Source of the DNA: Auanema rhodensis
Lineage: Eukaryota > Animalia > Nematoda
DNA length: 64,000 bases
Reading direction: 5' to 3'
NCBI GenBank assembly: GCA_964057225.1
Contig: OZ059895.1
Coordinates: 17,608,001 to 17,672,000, forward strand
Numbering within the stretch: position 1 is the first letter of the stretch; every line of letters begins with the position of its first letter. The notes under the pieces were generated by a model. That model had not been told where the DNA came from and ran no database searches. It saw only the letters and a list, made by a program, of their open reading frames with translations. A program made the translations under genes and the position numbers. This document shows positions 7,101-53,532 of this stretch, piece by piece.

Positions 7101-10100
7101 AAAAAATTGGTGAGCTGAGCTGACGGAAACATTCATTTCTCAAAGTTCATACAACGAAGCAAGCAAAGATTGAGAAGAAATGTAATCGGTCTTGCCTTAT
7201 TATACTTCTTCTTAGAGAGTTTATTGTGAATCATATTATTAATTGTCTTAAGTATAGATAAAAGCACATAAATCTTGAATTTATTGACTGATGGTGTTGA
7301 AGATGAAATAGTTTATCAAGTCATTTCAGCGCATATAAGCTGGTTATCTCTATCACTATTCGTTGTCTGACTGCATTTCATATCTCATACAACTAACTAA
7401 TTATGCTAACTATAAATTAGGATCATAGTCTAGCATGCAGATTTAGACGTCTTCTATTTCATTTTCTGCATATATTTTCATTCTAATGACTTAAAGAACC
7501 TGTCATTCAATTATCTCGCACCTCGATTCTATTAAGAAAACTTAAGTATGTGCCATCGTCATGTTTGATCGGATCCATTGATCACTCAAGCGGAAAAGTT
7601 GACTGAGTTTCATGGCCTACGGGAATAATTGATGGAAGAAGTAATTATCTACCACGTAAGTAAGAAGTAGTACTTATCTATGCTATAACTTTACGTTATA
7701 GTTATGCTATTTATCTTAAAGTTATAGAAATTGAATAACAAGAATGTATTTTTCTCACCACTTTTTTTAATTTCCCAAATGCAATTTTTCTCTCAGTTAG
7801 TTTTATTAATATAACTCAATATTTGACACATTTCTATGTCTTCCTTTATTACTATCATTGATATTACCTCATATTTTGGCTATTCTTTCGTATTAAACTC
7901 ATTTCCATAGGTGAAATAAGTTGCTCATTCTATAAAAGACAGGAGAAGGGAAGGGGGAGAGAGTTAGAGAGAGAAAAGAAGAGAGAGAGAGAAGAGAAGA
8001 TTGATAGATAGAGAGAATAGAAGAGAAACAGGCTGAGTACCATAAAAGGAAGAGATAGGGGATGAGGACCTATGTGATGTTGGTGATTCTGAATAGTTCC
8101 GGTTAATAAGTGTTCGACGCACGCATATGTTGTTCCATTCTGTACGTCGCTTTGTAGACTTGTCATTCGTTTAACCTCGTTCCAACTTACCTCACCTATG
8201 GAAATGAGTTCACCTCACTGGTCAGTCAAGTTAGTCAGTCAGATGACGAGACATTGACAACAATACAAGACAAAAACAAGCCGCAAGTAATATTCCAAAT
8301 AAATAATCATATACGTATTGAAAAGAAAGAAAATTTACTTGAGTAATACTTCTACATTACTTCTACTATATTCATTTTTACTATATATAATACGTATATT
8401 TTGAATAGTTAGTATTATCTTTATTACTTTTAGTTATGACAATCTTTTTTGTGTATCTCTTAATCATGTATATATGTATATATAGTGTTCATCTTACTGC
8501 TGCCTCGTCTATACGTATAGTTCTATTTCTCCAGACGTCCATTATCTGATTAACTTCAATCTCATACTTCCAATGCATGATCTTTTAACTTATTATTTAC
8601 TATTCAGCATCTTATCATTAGCTATTCTAGCTCTTAGTAGCATATTTTTTAAGCATATAAGATTTCAATTATAGTTTATATTTTAATTCAAACAAATCAA
8701 ATATATGCATATAGTTAAATGTTATCATCATATTGCCAATAATATAATACATATGGCTAGATGATGCAGCTGTTTTGATTGGCTTTTCTAAATTTTTTTG
8801 TATGAGAAAAACCGCTATTCATGTTCAGATGATTGAATAGCATCATTGAATGAGGTTGTAACGATATAATGTATCAGCATTACTAGCTATTTGTATATAA
8901 GTATATAGGTAATAACATTTTATCTATTTGGAACCAGTCTATCTAATATCTCACTATCTTCGGTTGTTCATTTCAAATTTTCGTTTCTAATTGCATTCTC
9001 GCTAGCGTTCCTTTATTATTCTTATTCGATTATAAAAAAAGTTTTTTCTTTTTTTCCCCTTTAAAACCTTAACTTGGTTACTTACTATTATATGAATTAT
9101 ATGTACTGCATAGCTTTTGACTTCTTCTGAATTATTCAAAAAATGCTCCAAATTGTTGTGCATATGCTCAGCTTACCTTTTAGCTTACCTACTTCCTATG
9201 ATTTCTTCTACGTTCTCTTCAATATATGTTTTTTGAATGTTCATATTCATATTAATTCATTCAAAACCTTCTGATGACCAGCAGATAAGAGTATCACTTT
9301 TATTCTTATGTTTATCAAAAATTAATATTACCTTCTGCTTAACAACATGTTACTGCTAATCCTCTGTGATGCAGTACTGATTGATCATATTATTTTTATT
9401 TTCTTCTGATAAGTTTCTTCAATGTTTCTTCGTTATCATAATTCATAAAAACCATATCCGTACCATCCATCTATAGTGATTGCCACGCAAGATGTATACC
9501 TTGAGGCTAATAACGTAACCTGGCTAACAATACCATATTGTCTTATATGAATCTATATAGAATCTATAAATTGATGGCAGCTTATTGTTGATTATCTTCA
9601 AATTTAACAAAGTGATGATAGTAAGCTGATCATGTTTTACGCTTACGCTTGTTGATGTTGATGCTATTTTTATTACATCTTTCACACCATTAGCATGTTT
9701 TAGAATTTATAGTATTTGGAAAAGAAATTGCTGCAGTTATGATCAAGCAAATACTAATAAGAGAGCGAAAAGCAAAAAAGCATGGTGCGATGGATAAGAA
9801 TTAAAATAATGAATATAGAGGAGCATGTGAAAGATGAGAGAAAGAATTCCAGAAAGCTAGTAAACATTGGAAGAGAGAGAGAGAGAAAGAGAGAAGGATG
9901 GAAAGAACTATAGAAGATGAATTGTGAAGGACATCTTTCAAGTGTCTCTATTTAACCGAGTATGTGTTGAGTTAGTTTGTTAGTAGAATATGTGCATATA
10001 GTTGAACGGACGGGAAAAATATGTTTCGCAACTGAGCTTCTACTATCAGCTGCTATCGTGTTTGCATCACTTGTTTCAATGCATGTGTGTGCATGCATGT

Positions 10101-17525: not shown

Positions 17526-17582
<57 letters not shown>
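17526..17582. repeat. (AT)n microsatellite
   Basis: Perfect AT run of about 28 units. Confidence 0.92.
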
Positions 17583-35345: not shown

Positions 35346-36773
35346 GAAAAAAATTTGCTTATATACCCCTATGACGGACAGACCACGTCAACCACGTTTA
35401 CGTAAAATTTCAAAAATTCAAAAAACAAAAAGCGGCTGTATACGATTTGAAAATTACAGGAAATGAATGAAAATAGTGTAAAAGAAATGTTTTAATTTAT
35501 ATTTTAATGTAATTAATATTATATTTTTAATATTATTATTAATATTTTATATTGTTTATAATTATAAAATATTTTTATATAATAAATATTACTAACTAAA
35601 TGTTTGTTTTTTTAATTTAATTTAAGTTGGTTATTAGTAATAAACATTTAAATAATTTGAAACATGAATATTATGATAATTAATTATAATTTCTTGATAC
35701 AATCAATATAGACAAAAATTTATTCTTATTTCACTAGAGTTTGACATTATTTAAATTTGCACAGGAAATCAAATAAGGAAGAACCAAAAAAGAATAAAGA
35801 TAATAATTATTAACAAATGACTAAAACAGTTCAAATTCTCGCGGGAGGCCAAGTATTTATTGATACACCTATTATACTAATTTTATTATATATTATATAT
35901 GTATATTGTTTTTTTTTCTTGCTTTAATATTATTCAAATAAATAAAAATATATTTCTAAACTTTTCTGCTTTACAACAAGGAAAACAAAATATTTCGTTG
36001 GAAATATTATATGATGTACATCATATCACATCTTGACTGTATAGGTAATTATAATAAAAATATAGAATACTTTTTTGGAGGAATAGGTTTTGTTTTTGTT
36101 TTAGTCATTTGTTAATAATTATTATCTTTATTCTTTTTTGGTTCTTCCTTATTTGATTTCCTGTGCAAATTTAAATAATGTCAAACTCTAGTGAAATAAG
36201 AATAAATTTTTGTCTATATTGATTGTATCAAGAAATTATAATTAATTATCATAATATTCATGTTTCAAATTATTTAAATGTTTATTACTAATAACCAACT
36301 TAAATTAAATTAAAAAAACAAACATTTAGTTAGTAATATTTATTATATAAAAATATTTTATAATTATAAACAATATAAAATATTAATAATAATATTAAAA
36401 ATATAATATTAATTACATTAAAATATAAATTAAAACATTTCTTTTACACTATTTTCATTCATTTCCTGTAATTTTCAAATCGTATACAGCCGCTTTTTGT
36501 TTTTTGAATTTTTGAAATTTTACGTAAACGTGGTTGACGTGGTCTGTCCGTCATAGGGGTATATAAGCAAATTTTTTTCAGTTGACAATCATTACTTCGA
36601 CTGTCGCCATCCGAAGAGGTCGACAGTTACTGGGCTCTTCAGACTCTGAATTTTGATATTCTGACTACATGGTATGAAATTAAAATTCTAACAAGATTGT
36701 AATCTTGAAATTTACAGAACTCTAAATTACTTATATCCAGTACGATGCATTTTCAAGACGACAGGCTACACTT
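35152..36773. repeat. Long inverted repeat: 677-bp arms (35152-35828 / 36097-36773) with a 268-bp spacer; foldback-like
   Basis: Symmetric positions sum to 71925 at both ends (no net indel). Only one mismatch was seen in the stretches compared (35165/36760). Confidence 0.92.
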
Positions 36774-50862: not shown

Positions 50863-51331
50863 TCAAACAGCAACTGCGAAGACGTATACAACAGCGAGCA
50901 TAGTTTTACTTTCCCAACGATATTGATAGGTAACTAAAACATACTTATATTCTTTACAAATAACAATTAACACTACTAACCGTCTGTAGTTTTGTTCCAA
51001 TAAGAAATAGTACTGACATTAAGCCCAGACCCGTTAGCAATTTGAAGTAAAGAAGATGTAACTGAAAAAAATGAAATAGCTTACATATATAACATGTAAA
51101 AAATACCAATATATTTAAAAGGCTTGTCATAGCTTACTAGACGTTGTGTGATTTTCTCAACAACTGTCTGATTCCATGCTGCACTATCATTTGGATTATA
51201 ATTATTAGAGCCAATCACGTCTTCCAAAACCTATAAAACTTCTAGTATTTGAATATCATAAACAAATAAATTACCTGATGGATAAGGTTTTTAACTTCCT
51301 CAACTGGGATGTGCTTTTGATCAGTCGTCAT
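50863..51331 (-). CDS. dylt-1: Dynein light chain, Tctex-1 type (not in the ORF track)
   Basis: Exons 51331-51275, 51230-51107, 51061-50981, 50933-50863 give MTTDQKHIPVEEVKNLIHQVLEDVIGSNNYN...W...KPFKYIVTSSLLQ..GSGLNVSTISYWNKTTD...RWESKTMLAVVYVFAVAV*, the Tctex-1 signature. Confidence 0.9.
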
Positions 51332-51530
51332 AACCTCTCTCAGAACTAAACAATTCGTTGACAGATAATTACAAAGAGCATGGAATGATATTGAATGTTC
51401 ATAACATAAGCTCAAAGAAAATAAGTTGTAAAATAAAACTTTATAAAAGCTATTCTATTTCATTATGAAAAAGTTGGAATGTTATTCATTACAAAAATTA
51501 TTAAAGCCAGAAAAAGAAATGACTAGATTT

Positions 51531-52913
51531 TTAAGCTTCTGGTTCGTATTCTGCATGGGTAAGGAGAGCACTCATTGAAGCTGACAGCTCAACGGTTCCT
51601 GTACAGAGAACTTTTCTGGACATAACATTGAATGGACCACCTTAAAGTCATCAATTTTAAGGTTTAAAAAATTGACTTTTAAAACCTGTGGGGTCAATAA
51701 CAACACCACCAGCTTCCAACACGATTACAGCGGCTGCAGCCACATCCCACGCATGAAGTCCATATTCCACATATCCATCACAGCAGCCTTGGGCAACCAT
51801 TATCATGTTAATTGCAGCAGATCCAAACGAGCGATGCCTGTAAATTCATCCGATGAATAAAATTCATTTGTGAATTCTGAATCAATAGCCGTTAGTACCC
51901 ATGACAATTGCTCTTAATCATCAAAGCTCTGTAAGATTCAATGAACGATCGCTCCATTTCAGGACAGCGAATCGATCCAAGCTGTGTAAGAAGTACACTT
52001 TGTGAAACTTCTGAAACACCGTGGTGAAACAAAAGGAGACCGTGGTGTATCCAGCATTGAACCGATGATTTAGGACATAGGGTAGGAACTACACTAACCC
52101 GCGGATACCAGCATGCACTTGTCTTTCCATGTTTCCTTGAGAAACTTGAAGCCAACTCTTACCAAAAGCGGAGATGTTATGAATTCCAAGAGAAGCGGCC
52201 AATAAAGATTGGTTCAATGCTGGATAAAGGTGCAACATAAGCTACGTTAAAAACAAATACCTGTAGTCTTTGAAGCATGAATAGGCAGCCCGTTCTTGTA
52301 AGCGCCTCTTCCAACCTAAGAAATAAAGGCAACATAATGTGACAAATAAAAATTTTACCTGAGCATGGAAAAGCTCTTTAGTAATTGGGTTATATACAAT
52401 TCCTGCACGAAGTTGCTTCTTGATAGCCAAACCTACACAGATAGCAATCATTGGAATACTACAATGAATATAAATTAAACATGTTTTCGCAACCACCCTA
52501 ACCGATGAACAAAGTTAGTAGTTCCATCGATAGGATCAATAATCCAAGTTGGAGCATCAGTGTATTCAATTTTAGCACCTCCAGCAACAGATTCTTCGCC
52601 AATAAACCTAAAATAGGAAATGATTATTCAAGATTAAAATAAAATAAAAAATACTTGTGATCAGGGAATTTTTCTCGGAGAGTTCCAATTATTAGTTTCT
52701 CGACAGCCTGGTCTGTTTCAGTAACTAAATCAGTAGCGGAAGCTTTAGTTTGAACAACGCTAGCAGGAGTGTCGAAAGCATCACGAACAAGCTAAGAGTA
52801 CAAGAATAAAATACCTAATATTAACGTTAACTTACTCGACCGGCAGCTTTCACAACTTCAAGAGCTGCAACAAAATATTCGTCTTCTTTAGGATCCAGCA
52901 ACATTTGAACCAT
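51531..52913 (-). CDS. ttx-7: myo-Inositol monophosphatase with two mutually exclusive exons
   Basis: Exons 52913-52836, 52791-52655, 52607-52503, 52458-52359, 52315-52261, [A 52219-52099 or B 52010-51899], 51837-51686, 51640-51531. Motifs: [40 protein letters not shown]. Confidence 0.94.
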
Positions 52914-53532
52914 TCTAAATTATACGTTAATATATCAACAATTATGACTAGAATCACATAGATAGACGAGGCAACAAAGGCTTCAGGAGTAAGAGGAGAC
53001 TGCATTAGCGAGTAAAATAGAAAAATCTAATATTGATTCAATGCATTAAGAGCTTTTATACTTCCTAGCAACAAGAGCATATAAAATCAGAAATTGCTTA
53101 ATTGTCCATAAATCAAGTAAATTAACTAGAAAGTAATCGATAAAAAATATAAAAGAAGGATTGGAATCAACGACCATCCATTTGTTTTAACGGACAAGAA
53201 TTTACGTGAAATTGAAAGGTAATTGAAAAAAAAATAAAATTGTATACAATTCTCCAGGAGAATTAGTACAATTGAAATTGAAGATAGAACAAAATTCGAT
53301 CCAACGTAATTTTATCGAAACGCAATATTGTAAACAGAGTGCGTGCAACTCACAACCTGATGACTTCATGTTATCATTGATGGATAAAACATTATTTTCA
53401 ATGTGTAATAACAATTCTATTACTACGCCCTTATGGTCTAATTTCTAGTCGAGCTAAATAATTAGGCAAATCTGGTACTATATCTTAAATGTTCTATTGT
53501 AATAAACAAATTTATATAAGTATAGGTTGATT

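Follow-up and report, generated by a model that had tools for sequence, protein, structure and literature searches.

A candidate competing-RNA switch between the mutually exclusive exons of ttx-7 in the nematode Auanema rhodensis

RNA stems that bury a splice site or loop out an exon lower its use, as in hnRNP A1 exon 7B, tau exon 10 and chicken beta-tropomyosin 6B. The closest described system to the one presented here is human ATE1, whose exons 7a and 7b are separated by a segment, R3, that pairs competitively with R1 and R4, two regions overlapping the 3' splice sites (Kalinina et al., Nucleic Acids Res 2021, PMC7797038); this switch was proven by compensatory mutagenesis and antisense oligonucleotides, and transcription speed matters to its outcome (PMC7797038). 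In insect Dscam exon 6, 14-3-3 xi and Mhc, as related in later papers, mutually exclusive RNA pairings with one common element set exon choice (Graveley 2005; Yang et al. 2011; via PMC4165533, PMC3923563). In nematodes, roughly 29 mutually exclusive clusters have been validated, and the explanations given are steric block by short introns, nonsense-mediated decay (NMD) and a few protein regulators (PMC4165533). Exons 5a and 5b of Caenorhabditis elegans ttx-7 (121 and 112 nucleotides (nt), with a 132-nt intervening intron) were found to be mutually exclusive in reverse transcription-polymerase chain reaction assays and 'partially' NMD-dependent (Kuroyanagi, Takei & Suzuki, Worm 2014, PMC4165533). 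Here we describe the ttx-7 orthologue of Auanema rhodensis, in a 64,000-nt stretch of contig OZ059895.1 (positions 17,608,001 to 17,672,000; 'the window', whose coordinates are used throughout), where a short intronic element, which we call the selector, may mask the acceptors of two alternative exons one at a time.

The gene lies on the minus strand, as do all features described below unless stated otherwise, occupies 51530-52913 from ATG to stop, and yields eight exons per mRNA. By sequence it is identified as an inositol monophosphatase (IMPase) gene orthologous to ttx-7: its exon 7 matches Pfam PF00459 (Inositol_P), its protein has 71% identity to isoform b of C. elegans TTX-7 and 88-89% to the two isoforms annotated in Auanema sp. 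JU1783, the closest protein, and both the exon pair and the gene neighbourhood are shared. The constitutive upstream exon e5 (52261-52315) is followed by a 41-nt intron (52220-52260), defined by sequence and by an RNA junction and ending in the weak acceptor UUUAUCCAG. Next come alternative exon A (52099-52219, 121 nt), a nematode-specific variant of this protein segment; the 88-nt A-B intron (52011-52098); alternative exon B (51899-52010, 112 nt), the canonical IMPase-like variant; and the constitutive downstream exon e7 (51684-51837), which accepts the donor of either alternative exon. Both exons have AG/GT borders, and both are 3n+1 in length. Spliced translation of e1-e5, A and e7-e8 gives an open frame of 285 amino acids, and exon B in place of exon A one of 282; inclusion of both leads to a stop at codon 216 and skipping of both to a stop at codon 170. 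These exons had been proposed in an earlier, sequence-only reading of the window, and a minus-strand read with script extraction reproduced its coordinates, lengths and strings to the base, as well as its claim that the two exons share a phase and that using both or neither shifts the frame.

Four RNA runs hold the exons at 100% identity, and we read the splice junctions from their assembled contigs. Exon e5 is joined to exon A (52261>52219) or to exon B (52261>52010) in all four runs, and e7 is joined to exon A (52098>51836) or to exon B (51898>51836). An A>B junction and an e5>e7 junction were looked for in the contigs of the four runs and neither was present; the A-B intron is excised as such in no contig. 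Contig depths for exon A (81, 39, 101 and 61 in the four runs) and for exon B (45, 15, 86 and 33) add up to roughly the depth of the flanking exons, and exon A is the commoner isoform, with A:B ratios of 1.2-2.7. The alternative junctions on which the sequence-only reading depended were therefore found, and at contig resolution exons A and B are used mutually exclusively. All introns of the gene are supported by RNA contigs. The SL1 leader is joined at an acceptor just upstream of the ATG (52914-52935); a loose contig end at 52916, CAAACTTGGGTAATTAAAC, is the SL1 reverse complement, which marks the transcript as nematode and its 5' end as trans-spliced.

The selector is a 22-nt block, GGUUCAAUGCUGGAUACACCAC, in the A-B intron (52042-52063). 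Its 52063-52048 portion forms a perfect 16-base-pair (bp) inverted repeat with 52226-52211 (UAUCCAG of the intron followed by CAUUGAACC of the exon), across the AG of acceptor A, exactly as the sequence-only reading had it. The predicted pairing, helix A, has a 5' arm (52208-52226) comprising the last seven intron nucleotides, including the AG, and the first 9-12 nt of exon A; it lengthens to 19 nt with one mismatch (52226-52208 with 52066-52048), at a duplex energy of -28.3 kcal/mol. With the acceptor A window set against the A-B intron, RNAduplex returned -30.8 kcal/mol, a value reached by none of 300 dinucleotide shuffles and none of 1664 real-sequence decoys. Only three non-low-complexity perfect inverted repeats of at least 16 nt with arms no more than 300 nt apart occur in the 64-kb window, and 30 first-order Markov simulations produced no such repeat. 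The pairing strength of helix A is beyond chance. Folding of the region, which the sequence-only reading had proposed as a check, places helix A in both the minimum free energy and the centroid structures, and folding of a growing transcript lowers the probability that acceptor A is unpaired from ~0.4 to 0.02 once the 3' end passes 52045. The whole region has a fold z-score of only -1.63, so the signal comes from this one helix rather than from structuredness in general. A further extension of helix A, GCACC/GGUGU, was dropped, being absent from Auanema sp. JU1783.

Comparison with the orthologous locus of Auanema sp. JU1783 (L001), in a two-species alignment, sets these elements apart from their surroundings. 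Identity between the two is 62-84% in exons and 36-59% in the other introns. The selector, GGTTCAATGCTGGATACACCAC, is identical at 22/22 positions, the remainder of its intron being unalignable; across the 1.4-kb gene no other identical run is as long, coding runs included. The core of acceptor A, ATCCAGCATTGA (12/12 identical), and a run at acceptor B, GGTGTTTCAGAAGT (14/14 identical), are also among the longest identical runs of the alignment. Fourteen consensus pairs of helix A show no change, and an exon-side A>G substitution (Asn>Ser) turns a single A-U pair into G-U; in Auanema sp. JU1783, two A-U pairs are gained at the position of the window's mismatch, giving 17 bp at -28.9 kcal/mol. 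Taken together, we are strongly inclined to regard helix A as real and under selection in the Auanema lineage. A search of Rfam with the selector region gave no match at E<=1, that is, no known RNA family or intronic snoRNA, and two pattern scans of metagenomes for the selector or the helix core gave no match.

A possible inner helix within exon A (52204-52195 with 52118-52106) would lie beneath helix A and close its loop; it appears in the RNAalifold consensus. Against Auanema sp. JU1783, one of its pairs goes from C-G to G-C through substitutions at two synonymous third positions and another from G-U to A-U, a weak hint, coming from two sequences only.

The selector can also be paired with the acceptor of exon B. 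In this predicted helix B, CUGGAUACACC (52054-52044) pairs with GGUGUUUCAG (52020-52011) through 5 bp, a bulged U and 5 bp more, followed by a 2x2 loop and GGU/ACC; the 3' arm (52011-52025) reads ACC, AC, then GGUGUUUCAG, and ends at the AG of the strong exon B acceptor. The hairpin folds as the sequence-only reading described it, at -12.0 kcal/mol in the window. The heptamer CUGGAUA (52054-52048) is common to both pairings. Ten core pairs are invariant across the two Auanema species, and the extension is kept in other letters: GGU/ACC in the window versus UGG/CCA plus an extra A-U in Auanema sp. JU1783, where helix B reaches -15.7 kcal/mol and is matched by 3 of 578 decoys. Furthermore, six conserved bases of the selector past helix A, CACCAC, and a conserved GGUG upstream of acceptor B are required by helix B and not by helix A; judging from the alignment, their conservation is explained only by helix B. 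The sequence-only reading had looked to orthologues for covariation in both helices: helix A offers the one change that preserves pairing through G-U, and the core of helix B offers none. A third pairing, of CUAAAUCAUC beside the selector with GAUGAUUAAG in exon B, was dropped because by eye it is not conserved in Auanema sp. JU1783.

Partition-function folding suggests that the two pairings influence each other. In the full pre-mRNA of the window, acceptor A has a probability of 0.03 of being unpaired and acceptor B one of 0.43; the latter falls to 0.19 when acceptor A is held single-stranded and to 0.20 when e5 and exon A are already ligated. The corresponding values in Auanema sp. JU1783 are 0.14 and 0.39 for the full pre-mRNA, then 0.05 with acceptor A held single-stranded and 0.30 after e5-A ligation. 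In these models, the direction of the change in acceptor B accessibility fits a toggle. The claim that the two helices are mutually incompatible thus holds for the shared CUGGAUA, with acceptor B accessibility going from 0.43 to ~0.2 without helix A; it does not hold for the inner CACC/GGUG pairs, which can coexist with helix A, so that the real competition is over CUGGA(UA).

The splice sites themselves are unequal. If the nematode acceptor consensus is taken to be UUUUCAG/R, UUUAUCCAG/C makes acceptor A weak and GUGUUUCAG/A makes acceptor B strong, which fits a need to restrain B. The 41-nt intron before exon A is close to the ~40 nt quoted as the minimum for C. elegans introns, a figure that also serves as the criterion for steric exclusion (PMC4165533); by that criterion the 88-nt A-B intron is too long for steric exclusion.

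We propose that the selector, lying between the alternative exons, would mask one splice acceptor at a time. This proposal rests on observed features: the sequences themselves, splice junctions that are mutually exclusive, a helix A that is statistically rare, and three arms that are all conserved in a second species. Pairing of the selector with acceptor A (16-19 bp) would bury that acceptor and loop out exon A; the UUUCAG of exon B would then stay open, and e5 would be joined to B. Helix A is ~16 kcal/mol stronger than helix B; were the two at equilibrium, it would prevail every time, leaving exon A skipped in every transcript. The major isoform nevertheless contains exon A, which rules out simple equilibrium competition and calls for a kinetic, co-transcriptional version. 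In that version, commitment or splicing of acceptor A, at the end of its 41-nt intron, would usually precede transcription of the selector, ~160 nt further on; CUGGAUACACC, thus freed, would then fold onto GGUGUUUCAG, so that the exon B acceptor is hidden and the exon A donor is joined to e7. The selector would thus act as a latch: commitment of the upstream acceptor releases it and the downstream acceptor is locked, whereas after late commitment the stronger upstream helix would loop out exon A. In both cases a single exon of the pair would be used; remaining errors, being frameshifted, would be removed by NMD. We infer that the helices form in vivo, that they inhibit use of the acceptors and that the choice is kinetic. 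Of the splice-site-masking toggle first suggested from the sequence, the anatomy stands, with strong comparative support from one related species; the equilibrium form of it fails, and its second helix is weak on its own.

Several observations weigh against this proposal. Helix B taken alone is marginal, being equalled by 10% of shuffles and 3.7% of decoys; half of it amounts to no more than complementarity to a consensus acceptor, and its pairs are all invariant, hence no covariation. We regard the reality of helix B as evenly balanced. The segment for which the two helices truly compete is only 5-7 nt, since the inner CACC/GGUG pairs are compatible with helix A, and kinetic control of the choice enters as an added assumption, called for by the disagreement between helix strengths and isoform ratios. 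The element is carried by only two related species. In addition, rare A+B or skipped products could escape the contigs. Balancing these points against the anatomy and the conservation, we find the case for the selector as an acceptor mask operating as a full latch about equally strong on either side.

The ATE1 system provides the most instructive comparison. As there, two mutually exclusive exons flank an intron with a shared element that is complementary to both acceptor regions, and one acceptor would be hindered at a time. Differences are also apparent. The upstream arm here spans the AG and 9-12 exonic nucleotides, whereas the ATE1 arm covers only the polypyrimidine tract; the two acceptor regions proved not to be duplicate copies of each other, with only YCAG in common; the two helices are very unequal (-28 versus -12 kcal/mol); and the whole arrangement lies within 220 nt, with no long-range R2-R5 module seen in the IMPase gene. 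The host is a nematode, and the effect on splicing is predicted here from sequence, folding and RNA contigs. With elements that are conserved, shared and exclusive, and arms that are not duplicates, the selector arrangement is, by analogy, plausibly one of ATE1-type competing RNA structures. The likeness to Dscam-type systems, as far as these are portrayed in the papers cited above, consists in one element common to mutually exclusive pairings. There, each exon has a selector of its own, the shared docking site is positioned outside the cluster, and the exon next to a pairing is activated; here the element was found between the exons, its pairings cover the acceptor AGs, and it is predicted to be repressive. 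With respect to the single-site masks of hnRNP A1 7B, tau 10 and beta-tropomyosin 6B, the difference is that one strand would serve two acceptors alternately.

C. elegans ttx-7 shares with the window an orthologous gene, exons of 121 and 112 nt, both 3n+1 and mutually exclusive, and wrong combinations that are NMD targets (PMC4165533). This agrees with the statement, in the sequence-only reading, that C. elegans isoforms differ in one exon, the pair 5a/5b having been validated as mutually exclusive (PMC4165533). The C. elegans intervening intron measures 132 nt versus 88 nt here, a difference that, with the closer protein match to Auanema sp. JU1783, shows the locus not to be that of C. elegans; no mechanism was proposed for the C. 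elegans pair and the exons were classed as non-homologous (PMC4165533). In the literature, we found no paper that ties ttx-7, or any mutually exclusive cluster of nematodes, to RNA structure. The earlier suggestion that such a toggle is undescribed for this gene may therefore be kept in part, given that no nematode report was found and that the kind of mechanism is known from human ATE1 (PMC7797038); it would plausibly be the first such switch in nematodes.

The exon pair itself is widespread. We found the 121/112-nt pair in Caenorhabditis, Diploscapter, Pristionchus and Nippostrongylus; exon A measures 121 nt in eight other nematode loci and in C. elegans exon 5a, and exon B 112 nt in all examined orthologues having exon B and in C. 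elegans exon 5b. In Mesorhabditis, exon A of the pair measures 124 nt. A-type and B-type proteins occur as far out as Steinernema, Panagrellus and Plectus, and from these sequence comparisons the A/B pair is judged to be ancient. Five deposited gene models (P0163, P0160, P0161, P0155 and P0173; 324-336 amino acids) are 40-50 amino acids too long, probably because both alternative exons were fitted into a single transcript by shifting splice sites, which would be an annotation artefact. A search with an exon-7 fragment for closer relatives returned only two distant genomic open reading frames (loci L010 and L012), of which L012 is too short. In L010 (Logan SRR10903008, 2096-2476), exon A is present and no exon B is detectable in the 380 nt before exon 7; that lineage may have lost exon B or never had it.

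The selector does not share this distribution. Its sequence and those of the acceptor arms are not conserved in C. briggsae, C. nigoni, C. bovis, C. angaria, Diploscapter, Mesorhabditis, P. pacificus or N. brasiliensis. The alignment across rhabditids proposed by the sequence-only reading thus gave a divided answer: selector and arms are kept in Auanema sp. JU1783, and their sequences are not conserved beyond Auanema. We also scored analogous pairings in other genera by duplex energy against shuffles and decoys, in about 14 tests. C. bovis, C. angaria, Diploscapter and N. brasiliensis showed nothing above background despite having the same exon pair, which is a further point against the masking proposal. 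C. briggsae and C. nigoni have a 13-bp hairpin over acceptor B, CUGGA.CUUUUGCAC with GUGCAAAA.UUCCAG, at -19.2 kcal/mol, matched by 2 of 428 decoys. In Mesorhabditis, a -32 kcal/mol helix joins acceptor A to the start of the A-B intron (0 of 300 shuffles, 5 of 462 decoys) and was also recovered in the repeat search; no acceptor B pairing was seen in Mesorhabditis spiculigera. Given the ~14 tests, the pairings in C. briggsae/C. nigoni and in Mesorhabditis are suggestive only. Two other candidates were rejected: a purine-rich segment of P. pacificus pairs with both acceptors at p~0.04 versus shuffles, but is matched by 11% and 7% of real-sequence decoys, and an acceptor A pairing in C. briggsae fails the decoy test (16%).

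Some details of these loci may be recorded. The intronic CUGGACUUUUGCAC pairs over acceptor B (GUGCAAAAUUCCAG) at ~1980-2052 of the C. briggsae locus (L003) and at ~2000-2073 of the C. nigoni locus (L002), and the UGGAC of this intronic element is also complementary to a GUCCA near the start of exon A. The 250-nt intron upstream of exon A in C. briggsae contains a 23-nt hairpin, 91% complementary and flanked by a second 16-nt pair (L003, 1648-1714; also in L002), a further candidate structure of this exon cluster. In M. spiculigera (L005), 2043-2061 pairs with 2191-2209, a pairing that takes in acceptor A plus ~30 nt at the start of exon A and would loop out the 124-nt exon A.

The most serious alternative is that only helix A is functional: it would mask acceptor A or loop out exon A, tuning its skipping, and exclusivity would come from frameshift, NMD and splice-site strengths. 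The pairing with acceptor B would be incidental, since the complement of one YCAG fits the next YCAG, and CUGGA, as the complement of a generic acceptor core, would supply half of helix B for free. This explanation draws on the contrast between a highly significant helix A and a helix B that is not significant against shuffles or decoys, on the partial NMD dependence of C. elegans ttx-7 (PMC4165533) and on Mesorhabditis, where a strong acceptor A helix occurs without an acceptor B helix. It does not account for the continuation of the conserved block through the 6 nt of CACCAC beyond helix A, nor for the conservation of GGUG upstream of acceptor B amid a diverged intron. It is also at odds with the stronger helix B of Auanema sp. 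JU1783 (-15.7 kcal/mol, 3/578 decoys), whose extension is kept with different bases, and with the unrelated 13-bp hairpin on acceptor B in C. briggsae. We hold this explanation to be possible but rather unlikely.

A second alternative is that the 22-nt block is a conserved site for a splicing-regulator protein, acting as an enhancer or silencer within the intron; that it is complementary to the acceptors would then be irrelevant. Conserved intronic blocks beside nematode alternative exons are usually protein sites, as in Kuroyanagi-type models, and there is no covariation within the block itself. A protein site, however, gives no reason for a perfect 16-nt complement of the upstream acceptor (0/1664 decoys), nor for an exon-side partner that changes only to a G-U-compatible base. 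To our knowledge, the block carries none of the C. elegans regulator motifs UGCAUG, GUGUGC, CUAAC and UCUU. We consider a protein site improbable. That the repeat has no function, having arisen by chance or recently and being merely tolerated, would agree with its absence from most other genera with the same exon pair, but is most improbable of all: a neutral repeat is not expected to stay identical over 22 nt while the neighbouring intron is unalignable and synonymous sites are ~25% diverged, and the chance expectation of such a repeat is ~0.

Returning to the selector as a latch, a broader hypothesis can be formulated: this would be the first RNA-structure-driven mutually exclusive exon switch in nematodes, acting as a kinetic latch and not through equilibrium competition, and acceptor masks may have evolved repeatedly, with unrelated sequences, on the ancient ttx-7 exon pair, as the 13-bp hairpin of C. 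briggsae/C. nigoni and the -32 kcal/mol helix of Mesorhabditis might indicate. We offer this broader hypothesis tentatively, the doubts outweighing the confidence.

The surroundings of the gene are conserved as well. A Tctex-1 (dylt-1-like) dynein light chain gene (~51084-51335, minus; Pfam PF03645) begins ~200 nt past the IMPase stop, and the order glycosyltransferase - ttx-7 - Tctex-1 is kept in all fetched nematode loci. As a sequence observation, this fits a conserved operon; C. elegans ttx-7 belongs to operon CEOP1388 (PMC3156134). Elsewhere in the window, the other two complex inverted repeats of at least 16 nt pair 7896-7915 with ~8192-8211 and 35805-35820 with ~36105-36120, and a long TA-type low-complexity palindromic tract at 17526-17570 dominates the raw inverted-repeat counts.

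The A. rhodensis locus provides a candidate RNA switch, defined by sequence and contained in 220 nt, in a gene for an enzyme whose neuronal role is known from C. elegans. If the proposal is true, the competing-structure mechanism would extend from insects and mammals to nematodes. The locus would also provide a small, readily mutated test case for co-transcriptional, kinetic splice choice, in which loss of the selector is predicted to lead to double inclusion.

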